The notes beneath the pieces are model-generated. The model saw only the letters and a list, made by a program, of their open reading frames with translations. It ran no database searches and was not told the DNA's origin. The translations under genes and the position numbers were made by a program. Positions 54,026 through 60,697 of a DNA stretch of 64,000 nt are shown here, one piece after another. Each line of letters opens with the position of its first letter. Position 1 is the first letter of the stretch. The DNA lies in the sequence record MW879340.1; one strand, 5' to 3'.

Positions 54026-55540
54026 ATGGAATCAACATCATTGCCGAAGGTTTCCATGATCCTGTACACGGATGGTGGCTTTCGGCAGAATGTGGGCGGA
54101 TGGGGTGTGCATGGATACACTCACCTCGTCGACGATACCGACGATAAGAAAAAGAAGAAGAAACCGGCGGTAGGTGTTCCGACCACAACCGGATACATCA
54201 TCAAAGACGATCCGAAACTGAATCAACGTGAAGTTGTGCGTCCGGTTCACGTTTTCGAATCGTTTGGCGGGTTGTTACCGGAAACCACCAACAACATCGC
54301 TGAAATCACAGCTGCTGTAAACGGTATGGATCTGGCCATTAACCAAGGTGCTGAGAAACTGTTGGTGTTTACCGACAGTGAATATGTCGTAAAAGGCATT
54401 ACCCAGTACCTGCACAAATGGAAGCAGAATGGCTGGAAGAAATCCACCGGTGACGAAATTGCCAACAAACCACTCTGGCAGGCCGTCGACGTTAAGTTGG
54501 GCGAACTGAAAGAGAAGAACATCCACTATACGTTCCAGTGGGTGAAGGGCCACGACGGACATCGTGGTAATGTCATGGCGGACTACATGGCAACGCGTGG
54601 TGTCATGCTTGGTAAACAAGGTGATGCCGAGCCACGTCATAACGTCCAGGACTTCAGCGAGTATGAGAAGTACAAAGCAGAGCGTCACCGTTTTGTGTCT
54701 CATTCCCGTTGGTACTTCAACCTCGGCGACGAGAACATGCTGAAGGCTAACCCTCATGGTTATTATGAGTATAGCTTTGGGCATCCGTCAAAAGAAGACA
54801 CTGACCAAGTCTATCTGGGTAAAGCGTTAGCTGATACTGCGTTTAGCGTGGTATGGCTGCAACAACCTGAAACCTGTTTGGACCTGGTCTATTCAAAGAC
54901 CAAGCAGATTGCCACGAACGTGTATGGCAATGTGTTCATTGGTCGCCTGGACAACATCTACAGCCCGTTCACTCATAAAGAGATCATGGACCACGCTGGC
55001 GATCTGTTGTTCCGTGCGAACAAGAATGATAACGACATCACCAACTGTACTGGCGCATTAATCGTGCGTGAGTGTAACCCACCGGCAATCTCCTATCGTG
55101 CAGTCAATAACCTGGTATTCTTGAACCAGTGCCTGACCGAGTTCCACACGGGTGAGCTGGATCCGTTGCGTAAGGTGTATGACGTTACTGACTTGATCTA
55201 CGATTCAGAGACAACGAAGAAGGGTGACGTGAAGATGTCCTTGAAAAAGGAAATCAAGCAAAACACGAAAGCCATCAAGTTGCCTGTGTCTTGTGAAGTC
55301 CTCGGTAAGCCAATCGTTGTCGACGTCACGTGCACGCTGGGGTTAGATATCCCAAGTCGTAACACGTTGAACGGCATCGTGGATGAGCATCCGAAGATTC
55401 ACATCATGGTAGTTAAGGAATCCGATGTAGCATTCCGTTATCTGACTATCATGTCGTGTGACGCCGGGTACTGCATCATGGCCAATGTGTACGCCAACCT
55501 ACGCATACTGTCTAAAGCGGAATTGGACAAGTGTGCCTAA
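54026..55540 (+). CDS. rnhA: ribonuclease HI with long C-terminal extension (phiKZ-type)
   Basis: YTDGG, TNNIAEITA, FTDSEYV..WK.NGWK, WVKGH.GH.GN.MAD. Confidence 0.92.
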   Translation: MESTSLPKVSMILYTDGGFRQNVGGWGVHGYTHLVDDTDDKKKKKKPAVGVPTTTGYIIKDDPKLNQREVVRPVHVFESFGGLLPETTNNIAEITAAVNGMDLAINQGAEKLLVFTDSEYVVKGITQYLHKWKQNGWKKSTGDEIANKPLWQAVDVKLGELKEKNIHYTFQWVKGHDGHRGNVMADYMATRGVMLGKQGDAEPRHNVQDFSEYEKYKAERHRFVSHSRWYFNLGDENMLKANPHGYYEYSFGHPSKEDTDQVYLGKALADTAFSVVWLQQPETCLDLVYSKTKQIATNVYGNVFIGRLDNIYSPFTHKEIMDHAGDLLFRANKNDNDITNCTGALIVRECNPPAISYRAVNNLVFLNQCLTEFHTGELDPLRKVYDVTDLIYDSETTKKGDVKMSLKKEIKQNTKAIKLPVSCEVLGKPIVVDVTCTLGLDIPSRNTLNGIVDEHPKIHIMVVKESDVAFRYLTIMSCDAGYCIMANVYANLRILSKAELDKCA

Positions 55541-56827: not shown

Positions 56828-58216
56828 ATGAGCTTATCTTTTGGTGAAGTTATTGAAAAATCCAAGCCGATACGACCGCTGTTGAATATCGGCGCTGGGT
56901 TTGACATCCCGACAGGATCATACCGTTTGGGTAAGCATGGCGAATCCATTCTGAATGGAGGCCTCGCCCCCTACACGGCTATCGTTGGGAAAGGCAACAC
57001 CTTTAAAACGGCTATCATGATGTTTATGATGGGTCGTGTATTAGAACGTTACAACAACAGTAACGCGCTGCACTACGATACCGAATGTACGTTTGGTACT
57101 GACCGTATTCTCAGCCTGATGTCTCACCTGGAACCAGGTACTGCACAGAGCTGGATCGACGACGGTCGTATTTACCTGACCGATGACTCCATCGCGAAAG
57201 GTAACGAATGGTTTAAGAAGACCGTTCAGGACTATGCTGGCTTAAAACAAAAAGATCGCAAGTCCATGGGCACCTTACCGTTTGTTGACAGCAACGGCAA
57301 CCTGATCCCGTATCTATACCCAACGGTCAACGGTGCTGACTCTATTTCCGAGATGAAGTTCAATGATCTCGAAAAGAACTACGCGAAGATGGAAATCGGT
57401 CAAGGCGAAATGCAAACCGAAGCCATGCGCGTATCGAACGCCAAGCGTATGCTGATCGAAAAGACGCAGGGTTACGCCAACGGCGGCGGTCTTTATGTCA
57501 TCATGTCTGCTCACCTCGGTAAAGAGCTGAACATGGACGGCAAGCCGCAAGAGAAGAAAACCACCTTCATGAAGCAGGGTGACAAAATCTCTAAAGTGCC
57601 GAGCCAAATCCTGTCGCTCCCGAACAACGCCTGGGAGATCTCCACCGGTACCGTACTGATTAACCGTGACACCAAAGAATGGATGTACCCGAAACCGGGT
57701 GACGTCGAGACTGCGGGTAACCCTGACTTACTGACGCTGATTGCTAAGAACCTGCGCGGTAAGAACGGTCCGTCCGGTGTACCGTGGGAATTTGTGATGT
57801 CTCAGTCTGAAGGCCTGCTGCCGTCACTGACTGAATTCAACCACATCAAAAACTGCAACCGCTACGGCCTGGGCGGTAACGATCGTAATTATTATGTTGA
57901 GTTGCTGCCAGACGTTAAGCTGATGCGTACGACTGTGCGTGGCAAAATCGACGAAACACCAGAACTGCGCCGTGCATTAGAGATCACCATGGAAATGTGT
58001 CAGATGCGCTATCTGTGGCATACCCGTGATCCGAAGTACAACATGACCCCACTCGAACTGCGTGAAGGTCTTGAGAAGAAAGGGTATAAGTGGGATCAAC
58101 TCCTCAACACCCGCGGCTTCTGGACGTACGAGGAAGATAACCATCCTCTGCCGTTCTTGAGCACCATGGACTTACTCCGCATGTATCATGATGAGTATCG
58201 TCCGTTCTGGATGTAA
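56828..58216 (+). CDS. uvsX: UvsX/RecA-like recombinase (phiKZ-type)
   Basis: IVGKGNTFKT P-loop, YDTE, ADSIS..F, C-terminal LS..DLL.MY; adjacent to RNase H and the RNAP fragment as in phiKZ. Confidence 0.85.
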   Translation: MSLSFGEVIEKSKPIRPLLNIGAGFDIPTGSYRLGKHGESILNGGLAPYTAIVGKGNTFKTAIMMFMMGRVLERYNNSNALHYDTECTFGTDRILSLMSHLEPGTAQSWIDDGRIYLTDDSIAKGNEWFKKTVQDYAGLKQKDRKSMGTLPFVDSNGNLIPYLYPTVNGADSISEMKFNDLEKNYAKMEIGQGEMQTEAMRVSNAKRMLIEKTQGYANGGGLYVIMSAHLGKELNMDGKPQEKKTTFMKQGDKISKVPSQILSLPNNAWEISTGTVLINRDTKEWMYPKPGDVETAGNPDLLTLIAKNLRGKNGPSGVPWEFVMSQSEGLLPSLTEFNHIKNCNRYGLGGNDRNYYVELLPDVKLMRTTVRGKIDETPELRRALEITMEMCQMRYLWHTRDPKYNMTPLELREGLEKKGYKWDQLLNTRGFWTYEEDNHPLPFLSTMDLLRMYHDEYRPFWM

Positions 58217-58306: not shown

Positions 58307-58723
58307 ATGTTAAATAAAGAAGTACGTATAGTCGTTGCCGGCGATAAAGGGTTCCACAACAAGGATCGTTTAAAGCTGGCACTTGATCGTCTCATCGCTG
58401 ATATCTTCTTAGTCAATGAAGGTGTGACCGATGAGGATGAGTTGTTAACGAAGGATCACATTCTGCTGATCACCAACGGCGAAGTTAAAACGTTGGCTGC
58501 GGAAGTGAAGGAGTACTCTGCTGAAAACCAGATCGATCTGCAAGAGATTGCGGTTGAATGGGACCGGGGTAAGAAAGCGTTCTTTGACAACTGCGGTGTA
58601 TTGGGGATGCGCTCTACCCATGCGATCATCTTCACCGGCCACAGTGACGAAGGAATGAAGACGCTGGTCAAAGACTGCCTGTCCGCAGGTAGCAGGGTGC
58701 GGGTATTTACCACCGCCGTCTAA
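58307..58723 (+). CDS. divergent SLOG-fold (YspA-like) protein
   Basis: VRIVVAGDKGF..LKLALD..LITNGE..EWD..HAIIF..GMKTLV parallels the SLOG domain of the next gene. Confidence 0.6.
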   Translation: MLNKEVRIVVAGDKGFHNKDRLKLALDRLIADIFLVNEGVTDEDELLTKDHILLITNGEVKTLAAEVKEYSAENQIDLQEIAVEWDRGKKAFFDNCGVLGMRSTHAIIFTGHSDEGMKTLVKDCLSAGSRVRVFTTAV

Positions 58724-58732
58724 GGATCTATT

Positions 58733-60022
58733 ATGATCGTATCGGAATCGCACATCGGCATTCTGGATGTTAAAGTCAGCCACGTCATCTGTACTGTCAA
58801 CACTGAAGGACATATGGGACGGGGAGTTGCACTTTATCTACGGAAGTGTATTCCTGGACTCTACGACGCATATCGTGAGCAGTGCAAACAAAAACAATTA
58901 CTGGTCAACACGCTGTGGGTTTACGAGAACAACGAACCGAGAATTCTTTGCTTCCCAACGAAAGACAAGACTTGGGAAGACAGCAGGCTGGAGTGGATTG
59001 AAACCAACCTGCGTACGCTGCGTGATACTTATCGGGAACGGGGCATCACGAGTGTTGCAATGCCACCGCTGGGCTGTGGCAACGGTGGTCTTAAGTGGGA
59101 GGACGTTCGTCCTCTCATTTATGCCATTTTGGGTGATTGTGATCTACAAGTGTACATCTGCCTTGGAGCCAAATTACCTAACCCGGATGACGACGTAACT
59201 AAACACATCAACATCTGGACGAAGTCGCGTCATTCATTAGGACGTGGTTTAAGCAACTTATCGAAGTACGGTTTCTTGCATGAAGATCACGGTTGGTTTG
59301 AATGCCTGGAAGGGTACTGGTATTGGTTGGCGACTGGTTGTAAACACGAACAGTTCAAAACCATGAACGGATGGGACGCCAAATCGATTGGATCGAAAAT
59401 GGATCGGGTGGAGATGCCTGACTTCCAGGAGCGGTTCAAAGAAGGGATGCGATTGCGTTTGGAACAAAACGAAATACTGCGTCTTGAATTGATCAACTCC
59501 ACATTACCGTTCGAACATTATTACGTCTACGGTAATCAGAATGGCAAGGTAGTGGATGTCAAAGCCCGCCATCAGTGGCAGCTCGACTTCTATGACGAAT
59601 ACCGTAAGGCTGAGAGGGCAAAATTGGAGCGTGATACCTTGAACGTATTAATTGCCGGTGGCCGGACGTTTAACAACTACCGTGTCTTTGATGCGGTGGT
59701 AAAAGAACAGCTGGCTCACTTTGAAACCCCGTTTGATGGGGATTATGATATCAACATCATTACCGGGTTGGCGCTCAGCGGCCCTGACGACATGGCGATT
59801 GAGTACTCCCGTAAGAACGGCTGTCAGCTGACTGGCTGGCCTGCACTGTGGGACAAGTACCAGAAACGGGCCGGGATGATTCGTAATCACCACATGTCCA
59901 AGCAGAATCTACACTACGCCATCATCTTCTGGGACGGTGAATCCCGCGGGACCAAGAACATGATCGACCTTCTCGTCAAGAATGATATAGCCCATTTTAT
60001 CTATATCTACCCCAAGGAGTAA
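58733..60022 (+). CDS. Macro (DarG-like) + NADAR-like + SLOG (YspA-like) fusion protein
   Basis: aa 1-143: TVNTEGHMGRGVA, FPTK, PPLGCGNGGLKW; aa ~158-295: LSNL..F.HE..LEGYWY..AK.IG..EQN..L..L; aa 303-429: IAGGR.F, ITG..GPD, W..Y.KRAGMIRN..M, FWDGESRGT..MI. Confidence 0.85.
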   Translation: MIVSESHIGILDVKVSHVICTVNTEGHMGRGVALYLRKCIPGLYDAYREQCKQKQLLVNTLWVYENNEPRILCFPTKDKTWEDSRLEWIETNLRTLRDTYRERGITSVAMPPLGCGNGGLKWEDVRPLIYAILGDCDLQVYICLGAKLPNPDDDVTKHINIWTKSRHSLGRGLSNLSKYGFLHEDHGWFECLEGYWYWLATGCKHEQFKTMNGWDAKSIGSKMDRVEMPDFQERFKEGMRLRLEQNEILRLELINSTLPFEHYYVYGNQNGKVVDVKARHQWQLDFYDEYRKAERAKLERDTLNVLIAGGRTFNNYRVFDAVVKEQLAHFETPFDGDYDINIITGLALSGPDDMAIEYSRKNGCQLTGWPALWDKYQKRAGMIRNHHMSKQNLHYAIIFWDGESRGTKNMIDLLVKNDIAHFIYIYPKE

Positions 60023-60028
60023 GTCGAC

Positions 60029-60697
60029 ATGAACGCAGCACGTCAAGCGGTCGAGCAGTACATTTCAACAGCCATGGCACAAGTGCTGTCGGGTAACAAG
60101 AACCCAGAGATCTACAAAGACTTCTTTGCTCGTCTTGACGACGATCAGTTTGAAGCTTTGCTGGAACGTATGGAAAAGGATGGTGAGTCTTTCCCGTTTT
60201 ACCATCCTAACTTCACCGGTAAGAACATTGACCTGGAGCAGCTGATTGAATTGATCACCAAAGAAGGTGGTGCGTTCATGGAGCAGATCCACATGGTCGA
60301 CTTCGAAACCGGGCAGAAGTTCTTGACACCTATCAAGTATCCGATCCTGCGCCTCCCACTGCGTATTCAGCAGCAGAAGTTGCAGAAGAAAATGTCGGTG
60401 CCGAAAGATAACAAACACGTGGATGACTTAACCGGTCAGCCTACTACGGAATCTAAAGGTTCTGCGATCTCGTATCCTGAGATTCAGATTCTCTATGCGA
60501 TGGGTCTGAACAAAACCATGCAGGAGCTCCTGAAGGTCCGTGGTGGCGATGAGAAAGCCTACCGCGAATATAACAACGAAATCATTGCTACGGGCGGTGT
60601 GAACGTTGGCGCCATCGCCAGTCAGAAAACCAAAGTGAAATCCACGAAGACCGTGGGGTCCATCCTGACCGCGATGATGCTGACCAACAACCTGTAA
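60029..60697 (+). CDS. virion RNA polymerase beta subunit, C-terminal fragment (phiKZ gp149-like)
   Basis: KKMSV..VDDLTGQP..SKGSAISYPEIQILYAMG..ELLKVRGGD corresponds to the C-terminal conserved region of RNAP beta. Confidence 0.88.
   Translation: MNAARQAVEQYISTAMAQVLSGNKNPEIYKDFFARLDDDQFEALLERMEKDGESFPFYHPNFTGKNIDLEQLIELITKEGGAFMEQIHMVDFETGQKFLTPIKYPILRLPLRIQQQKLQKKMSVPKDNKHVDDLTGQPTTESKGSAISYPEIQILYAMGLNKTMQELLKVRGGDEKAYREYNNEIIATGGVNVGAIASQKTKVKSTKTVGSILTAMMLTNNL

Follow-up and report, generated by a model that had tools for sequence, protein, structure and literature searches.

The window analysed here is a stretch of 64,000 nucleotides from sequence record MW879340.1. On its plus strand, positions 58733..60022 hold one open reading frame (ORF) with an ATG start, which encodes a protein of 429 amino acids (aa) in which a macrodomain, a NADAR domain and a SLOG domain are fused. 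Three domains in this one ORF had been called in a sequence-only reading of the window, and all three calls were supported by the analyses described below. The window is 100% identical to the Erwinia phages pEa_SNUABM_48 and pEa_SNUABM_37, both 294-kb jumbo phages of Erwinia amylovora, and the fusion protein is 100% identical to a coding sequence in each of them. The counterpart in pEa_SNUABM_48, QXO10626, is labelled 'hypothetical protein'.

Domains of the fusion protein

The N-terminal macrodomain of DarG/AdfM type spans residues 1-146 (58733..59170, plus strand). The motifs from which it had been recognised as DarG-type are present, with VNT..G.MGRGVA at residues 22-33, FPTK at 74-77 and PPLGCGNGGLKW at 111-122, and the assignment is borne out by matches to DarG in the PDB, NCBIfam and PADLOC. 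Pfam Macro (PF01661) matched with an E value of 6.5e-11 and 42.6 bits, against a gathering score of 22. The best PDB sequences were the DarG proteins 5m31 of Thermus aquaticus (2.7e-23) and 5m3i of M. tuberculosis (2.9e-21), human TARG1 being far behind (2.6e-7), and the PADLOC DarG model matched at 3.9e-43. The NCBIfam equivalog antitoxin_DarG gave an E value of 2.3e-40 with a score of 138.9, below the cut-off of 250; the match runs from position 8 to 156 of a profile with 338 positions, so that the half of the antitoxin that binds DarT is missing. 5m31 was also the top Foldseek match of the macro part, in a model whose predicted local distance difference test (pLDDT) values are low there because the alignment is shallow. 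Bacterial DarG2, as represented by T. aquaticus 5m31 and the DarG of E. coli pSTEC1012_1, is the best sequence and structure match for residues 1-146. Unlike bacterial DarG2, the window protein has no C-terminal DarT-binding domain and no adjacent DarT gene.

Residue roles have been described for the catalytic Lys of FPTK, an Asn of the substrate site and a Gly-rich phosphate loop (PMC11543638, PMC13309987). The corresponding elements in the window protein are Lys77, Asn23 and the Gly-rich loop at residues 111-120; Lys77, Asn23 and Gly114-Gly118 align with the residues of DarG and of Asesino AdfM. Among the aligned sequences covering those positions, Asn23 and Lys77 were found in 12/12 and the Gly-loop residues in 13/13, and they are invariant in the fused relatives. 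The macrodomain is 41% identical to an E. coli DarG encoded beside a DUF4433/DarT gene, and the closest plasmid and chromid matches (41-43% identity) are macro proteins adjoining DUF4433 (DarT-family) genes. Judged by these comparisons, the macrodomain is DarG-type and closer to bona fide DarG beside DarT than to generic macrodomains. On E. coli pSTEC1012_1 (locus L009:1851-3571), a type I restriction-modification system carries a DarT (DUF4433)-DarG pair between its S and R subunit genes, a defence-island arrangement in an enterobacterial host.

AdfM (PhiKZ gp104, also in Asesino and PhiPA3) is a chimallivirus DarG2-like macrodomain that strips DNA of the ADP-ribose added by DarT2 and shields nucleus-forming phages (PMC13309987). 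The window macrodomain is like AdfM in being DarG-type without the DarT-binding domain, in coming from a jumbo phage of the nucleus-forming group, and in keeping the Asn, the Lys and the Gly loop. It was 28% identical to Asesino AdfM (gp217), with an E value of 7e-18. AdfM is a stand-alone protein encoded at a different locus, whereas the window macrodomain is fused to NADAR-SLOG. By analogy, the macrodomain may hydrolyse ADP-ribose from thymine in single-stranded DNA (ssDNA), the mark made by DarT2.

The middle domain is a phage-type NADAR domain of YbiA fold at residues 145-300 (59165..59632, plus strand). It had been the least certain of the three calls, and this caution is explained by the failure of Pfam and NCBIfam models to detect the NADAR clade concerned. 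Neither PF08719 (NADAR) nor PF08010 (gp30.3) matched the middle domain at E<=10, NCBIfam and PADLOC gave no significant match, and only 2/45 homologues matched PF08010, weakly (E 0.08). A match to 'Olfactory marker protein' at E about 0.008, below cut-off, was dismissed as chance. With a 45-sequence profile as query, the only chains retrieved from the full set of PDB sequences at E<=10 were two NADARs, 8bau (0.048) and E. coli YbiA 2b3w (0.53).

Structure comparison was among the checks that the sequence-only reading had proposed. When the whole 429-aa model was compared with the PDB by Foldseek, macro matches were obtained together with meaningless eIF2B-type Rossmannoid alignments (template modelling (TM) score about 0.2, root-mean-square deviation (rmsd) >16 A). 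Because these dominated the result, the middle domain was modelled separately. The AlphaFold2 model of the domain alone had a mean pLDDT of 97, and its only credible PDB folds were YbiA 2b3w (probability 1.0, TM 0.65), Phytophthora NADAR 8bau (1.0) and Geobacter NADAR 8bat (0.90), all further matches having a probability of <=0.08. The YbiA fold consists of a helical core with a small beta-hairpin on either flank.

The gp30.3 homologue from Shigella phage vB_SdyM_006, which matches PF08010 at 1.2e-42, was used as the comparator for gp30.3. In hhalign, the 45-sequence profile aligned to it with a probability of 93.9% and an E value of 1.6e-7, and Glu193 paired with the gp30.3 Glu and His262 with the gp30.3 His. 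Glu193 is invariant (69/69 sequences) and also aligns to the Glu of 8bau and 2b3w; His262 is conserved in 68/69. Phage NADARs of the gp30.3 kind carry His where YbiA has its catalytic Glu and DarG1 an Asp (PMC11543638, PMC11125620, PMC12945103). Foldseek, the PDB profile search and the alignment to the gp30.3 homologue agree, and four independent lines, drawn from sequence comparison and modelling, support the assignment of the middle domain as a divergent NADAR that is distantly homologous to T4 gp30.3/AdfN.

T4 gp30.3 (AdfN) is a NADAR that hydrolyses guanine-linked ADP-ribose and counters DarTG1 (PMC11125620, PMC11825919). The window domain shares with it the NADAR (YbiA) fold, the aligned catalytic Glu and the phage-family His that replaces the YbiA Glu. 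It differs from AdfN in belonging to a separate, very divergent clade, missed by both PF08010 and PF08719, and in being fused to other domains. Like AdfN, the domain may hydrolyse guanine-linked ADP-ribose, the mark of DarT1-type and pierisin-type transferases.

An exhaustive HMMER search for the clade (E<=1e-3) yielded 1,264 cluster representatives at 50% identity, many of which are stand-alone proteins of ~150 aa. By tblastn with the window NADAR (E<=1e-3), the clade was found in 527 phage records, with no T4-size record among the 60 of them that were listed. The records are mostly annotated as 'hypothetical' and in a few cases as 'NADAR', 'DUF1768' or 'N-glycosidase'; that clade members are mostly called 'hypothetical' or 'DprA-like' is due to their being invisible to current Pfam and NCBIfam models. 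A link of the clade to the tested AdfN-Bas60 (Vequintavirinae) was not established, no BASEL phage name occurring among the best 60 of 222 records. In Salmonella phage SSBI34 (Vequintavirinae; L008:2501-2962), the clade is represented by an ORF that carries no annotation and shares 38% identity with the window domain. This ORF closely precedes the gene for the phage DNA ligase, an arrangement reminiscent of T4, where gene 30.3 adjoins gene 30.

The C-terminal domain is a Rossmannoid SLOG domain of YAcAr/DprA type at residues 301-429 (59633..60019, plus strand). Its earlier description as YspA-like agrees with the matches obtained. Pfam YAcAr (PF10686) scored 24.3-26.9 bits on the window protein, just below the gathering score of 28.2, and matched 19/20 NADAR-SLOG homologues (best 9.6e-13). 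In the BFVD, many viral models of YspA cpYpsA-related SLOG or DUF2493 proteins matched with probability 1.0 and rmsd of 2-3 A. The pLDDT of the region was >90 over most of residues 301-429 (blocks 64 to 96). Pfam DprA was matched by 6/20 NADAR-SLOG homologues, weakly and below cut-off, and the window protein gave zero matches to Pfam DprA (PF02481). When a SLOG profile was searched against PDB sequences, DprA Rossmann domains came first (best 3uqz); the E value was marginal and the alignment spans G-S-R and S-G-x-A-x-G-x-D.

The motifs of the domain are G309-G-R311, G345..G350-x-D352, A380-G-M-I-R384-N385 and S404-x-G406. G309, R311, G345, G350, D352, W373, A380, G381, R384, N385, S404 and G406 are invariant in 20/20 homologues, and the middle position of the first motif is S, G or T across the family and Gly in the window protein. 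The ssDNA-binding signature of DprA consists of G-S/T/A-R and of F/L/Y(or A-M)-x-x-R-N/D in helix alpha-6 (Wang et al., PMC3950713); in H. pylori DprA, the G-x-R and x-x-R-N motifs bind the base of ssDNA (PMC3950713). The window SLOG is like the DprA/Smf Rossmann domain (PMC3950713) in its G-x-R loop, SGxAxGxD and x-x-R-N helix motif, and by alignment it keeps both DprA ssDNA-binding motifs. Unlike DprA/Smf, it is shorter, occurs with no other DprA domains, has no Pfam DprA match, is closest to YAcAr and has Gly for Ser/Thr/Ala in the first motif. The SLOG domain may hold the enzyme on ssDNA or on an ADP-ribose-type nucleotide. The proposal of the sequence-only reading that it binds or processes the 'released signal' is therefore only one option, since the kept DprA motifs may instead tether the protein to ssDNA.

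The UvsX locus and the origin of the fusion

The genes around the fusion are those named in the sequence-only reading. The left neighbour is a UvsX/RecA-like recombinase (56828..58216, plus strand; phrog_97, 1.5e-47), called UvsX in relatives, and its region has ~78% nucleotide identity with Agricanvirus phages such as RAY and Ea35-70. Between UvsX and the fusion lies a gene for a divergent SLOG-like protein of 138 aa (58307..58723, plus strand; Pfam YAcAr 23.8 bits, E 3.9e-5; phrog_289, 2.7e-7), which is kept at the same position in the Agricanvirus phage AH06 and in Salmonella phage vB_SalM_SA002 (SA002). In the alignment, the G-x-R, SGxAxGxD and R-N residues, all invariant in the C-terminal SLOG of the fusion, are not kept in this upstream protein. 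As these canonical pocket residues are missing, it is probably a non-canonical and possibly non-binding paralogue. The right neighbour is a piece of the RNA polymerase (RNAP) beta subunit (60029..60697, plus strand; phrog_3233, 3.3e-87), whose homologue carries the label RNAP beta in AH06 and that of a virion structural protein in SA002.

UvsX, the SLOG-like gene, the fusion, the RNAP beta piece and further genes form a tight, co-directional block with gaps of 6-90 bp, and the fusion gene is one gene downstream of UvsX. No DarT partner gene is present next to the fusion, the neighbours being the UvsX, SLOG-like and RNAP genes. In a scan for sigma-70 promoter and terminator consensus around the gene, sites were no more frequent than in shuffled sequence. 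Elsewhere in the window, at 54026-55540 (plus strand), a 504-aa protein carries an RNase H domain at residues 78-193 (Pfam E 6.3e-27) between long flanks without assignment; it is conserved in AH06 and SA002.

The presence of the fusion in this core block had been regarded as an unusual insertion. This part of the sequence-only reading was not upheld, as AH06 and other Agricanvirus relatives carry the same domains there as separate genes. The AH06 locus consists of UvsX, a 139-aa SLOG-like gene, a 147-aa macro gene, a 115-aa gene, a 292-aa NADAR-SLOG gene, a 94-aa gene and RNAP beta; relatives with only the middle domain at this locus had been asked for, and what AH06 has there is SLOG, macro and NADAR-SLOG genes. 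In other Agricanvirus phages, SLOG, macro and NADAR-SLOG genes likewise lie downstream of UvsX, as judged from tblastn positions. The NADAR-SLOG homologue, stand-alone in AH06 and RAY, is named 'DprA-like protein' in RAY. Since separate macro and NADAR-SLOG genes occupy the same locus in Agricanvirus, the cassette is ancestral and not an insertion peculiar to this phage. The window lineage fused the neighbouring macro and NADAR-SLOG genes, and only the fusion is lineage-specific. PHROG 11222 (293 aa) spans residues 148-428 of the fusion protein, indicating that NADAR-SLOG was a pre-existing two-domain module.

The fused architecture of 421-429 aa recurs in metagenomes, where at least 9 more clusters built at 90% identity show it with identities of 73-89%; because of this recurrence the fusion is not a sequencing artefact. 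Among 160 retrieved homologues, 84 had NADAR alone, 18 were X-NADAR-SLOG and 9 were macro-NADAR-SLOG; X was DUF4326 in all 11 X-NADAR-SLOG proteins scanned against Pfam. Independent four-domain proteins with the orders Macro-DUF4326-NADAR-SLOG and DUF4326-Macro-NADAR-SLOG (P0062, P0109) were also found, and the macrodomain of the Macro-DUF4326-NADAR-SLOG protein is again DarG-type (NF048014, E 4.7e-70). For each domain, the homologues aligned with it retain the key residues that were checked.

Two variants of the gene were seen in related phages. In a sister jumbo phage, represented by a Logan contig of 291,896 bp and by an ENA contig (L004/L005:6001-8055; P0004, P0002), the same gene encodes 684 aa, and an in-frame segment of ~260 aa, resembling a homing endonuclease with GIY-YIG and I-TevI-type DNA-binding parts, lies exactly at the macro/NADAR junction. 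Synteny in this phage is otherwise identical. A group I intron was considered as the cause, and Rfam found none; AH06 gp159, which lies between macro and NADAR-SLOG, was considered as a relic of the homing endonuclease of the sister phage and showed no similarity to it. In SA002 (L003:6933-8809), the gene is split into a 290-aa macro-NADAR ORF and a 326-aa ORF with the end of the macrodomain and NADAR-SLOG. A single direct repeat of 300 nt or more, with 97% identity, is present in the region, and for this reason the two-ORF form has the look of an incomplete tandem duplication or of an artefact of assembly.

Proposed function and alternative explanations

The enzyme activities, their substrates, the contribution of the SLOG domain and a function in counter-defence are our inference, as follows. 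The gene would encode an orphan-antitoxin-type nucleic-acid de-ADP-ribosylase with two different erasers and a binding module, a reading to which we give about an even chance. The macrodomain, of DarG2/AdfM type, would strip from thymine in ssDNA the ADP-ribose written by DarT2, and the NADAR domain, of AdfN type, would strip from guanine that written by DarT1-type and pierisin-type transferases. The SLOG domain would anchor the enzyme on ssDNA or on an ADP-ribose-type nucleotide. Such anchoring would put both erasers where DarT toxins act, at replication and recombination intermediates, and is consistent with the position of the gene beside UvsX. That one protein reverses both thymine- and guanine-linked DNA ADP-ribosylation is plausible by analogy, the precedents being the separate phage proteins AdfM (PMC13309987) and AdfN (PMC11825919). 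In support, a close relative of the window phage is Erwinia phage RAY (78% nucleotide identity in UvsX), which is described in the literature as a nucleus-forming phage. A more specific version, which we put forward only tentatively, is a pan-DarT eraser in which a DprA-like SLOG clamp would park the thymine- and guanine-specific glycohydrolases, which are mechanistically unrelated to each other, on the ssDNA of replication/UvsX intermediates in the phage nucleus.

Several observations weigh against a de-ADP-ribosylase of nucleic acids. The pocket residues of the SLOG domain are general to nucleotide-binding SLOG domains, and for that reason the pocket does not tell ssDNA and a free nucleotide apart. 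In the sequence alignment, the position of the phosphate-binding Lys of characterised NADARs (K50 in P. nicotianae, K95 in E. coli C7) is Ala/Thr here; another Lys/Arg position, K217, is conserved in 69/69 sequences of the clade. The clade as a whole is too divergent for the Pfam NADAR, Pfam gp30.3 and NCBIfam models. AdfM of Asesino and of PhiKZ is only 28-30% identical to the macrodomain and is encoded at another locus. NADAR-SLOG is most often joined to DUF4326, a predicted phosphatase, and not to macro, and Iyer et al. take this partnership as evidence for processing of small ADP-ribose derivatives and not of DNA adducts.

The last point belongs to the alternative that survives best. Macro/NADAR/SLOG/DUF4326 architectures, including those of jumbo phages, were catalogued in silico by Iyer, Burroughs, Anantharaman and Aravind in 2021/2022 (PMC7824862, PMC9503650). 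The domain set is the same as here, and the partners DUF4326, YAcAr and Macro were recovered in the present analysis. Their predictions are computational and concern mainly soluble derivatives of ADP-ribose (ADPr), and the window gene is not known to be listed there. Following their model, the three domains would cut different bonds of soluble ADP-ribose derivatives from host immunity, and DNA adducts would not be the main substrate. Possible substrates would be the cyclic ADP-ribose (ADPR) isomers that TIR/Thoeris systems produce, or toxins of the kind of ADPr-1''-phosphate; the SLOG domain would serve as sensor or N-glycosidase, the NADAR domain as N-glycosidase, and the macrodomain would take groups off the distal ribose. 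We regard this explanation as possible but doubtful.

It is favoured by the age of the NADAR-SLOG module (phrog_11222; stand-alone in AH06 and RAY) and by the standing of DUF4326 as the most frequent third partner, in 30/70 and 11/20 homologues. The macrodomain of the window protein occupies the N-terminal slot usually filled by DUF4326. SLOG domains of Thoeris-type systems bind ADPR-derived signals. DUF4326 itself is predicted to process ribose-linked phosphates, according to Iyer et al. However, macro and DUF4326 occur together in one protein (P0062, P0109) and so are not simple substitutes. The macrodomain is specifically of the DarG clade, which acts on DNA-linked ADP-ribose (PMC13309987), and every NADAR family tested so far removes ADP-ribose from guanine in nucleic acids. 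The presence of the DprA ssDNA motifs in the SLOG domain also speaks against soluble signals as the substrate. Sequence and fold searches gave no likeness to known anti-Thoeris sponges: no Tad chain of Tad1/Tad2-type sponges was found in the PDB sequence or fold matches, apart from a chance-level ThsB-Tad3 row with a probability of 0.04.

An accessory role in recombination and repair appears unlikely. The protein would then be chiefly a DprA-like mediator that loads or aids UvsX on ssDNA, and its hydrolases would clean ADP-ribose lesions of host or phage origin as general repair. The tight co-directional block, with the gene one position downstream of UvsX, and the annotation of homologues in relatives as DprA-like are in keeping with such a role. 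So are the 6/20 homologues that touch Pfam DprA, the rank of PDB DprA as best sequence-profile match for the SLOG part, and the suggestion of Iyer et al. in 2021 that jumbo-phage DprA/SLOG proteins are extra ssDNA-binding proteins. Against it, the window protein has no Pfam DprA match and its best domain match is YAcAr, and neither the surface for RecA interaction nor the remaining domains of true DprA were found. The NADAR-SLOG and DUF4326-NADAR-SLOG architectures are also present in many phages, where the gene may or may not be linked to a recombinase.

It is very improbable that the protein reverses or tunes ADP-ribosylation of host or phage macromolecules by phage-encoded ADP-ribosyltransferases (ARTs): Iyer et al. 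note that NADAR genes of T4-like phages are expressed with ARTs and propose 'toggle' roles for such fusions, but the immediate neighbourhood, which was the region scanned, holds no ART gene, and DarG-type macrodomains are DNA-specific (PMC13309987).

Relation to earlier work and significance

Bacteria halt phages with DarT toxins, which attach ADP-ribose to thymine or guanine of the viral ssDNA, and the known phage answers are either an AdfM macrodomain or an AdfN NADAR. AdfM and AdfN are known experimentally, as separate proteins, and Macro/NADAR/SLOG/DUF4326 fusions were described computationally in 2021-2022. The DprA ssDNA motifs in the SLOG domain and the history of the fusion at the UvsX locus were not found in the literature consulted, and no assay of the fused protein or of the NADAR clade of the window was found there.

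The analysis brings to light a large NADAR clade (about 1,260 clusters at 50% identity) beyond Pfam and NCBIfam detection. It also provides a concrete system for asking whether DNA adducts or soluble ADP-ribose signals are the substrates of the NADAR-SLOG and DUF4326-NADAR-SLOG modules that are so common in phages. If the SLOG domain does clamp both glycohydrolases on ssDNA, one polypeptide would neutralise both DarTG classes and perhaps other base-directed ADP-ribosyltransferases, and the widespread NADAR-SLOG module would be an unrecognised ssDNA-targeted repair enzyme and not a signal degrader. If active, a single protein with both erasers and a nucleotide- or ssDNA-binding SLOG domain would be a compact, broad-spectrum answer to DarT-class defence.

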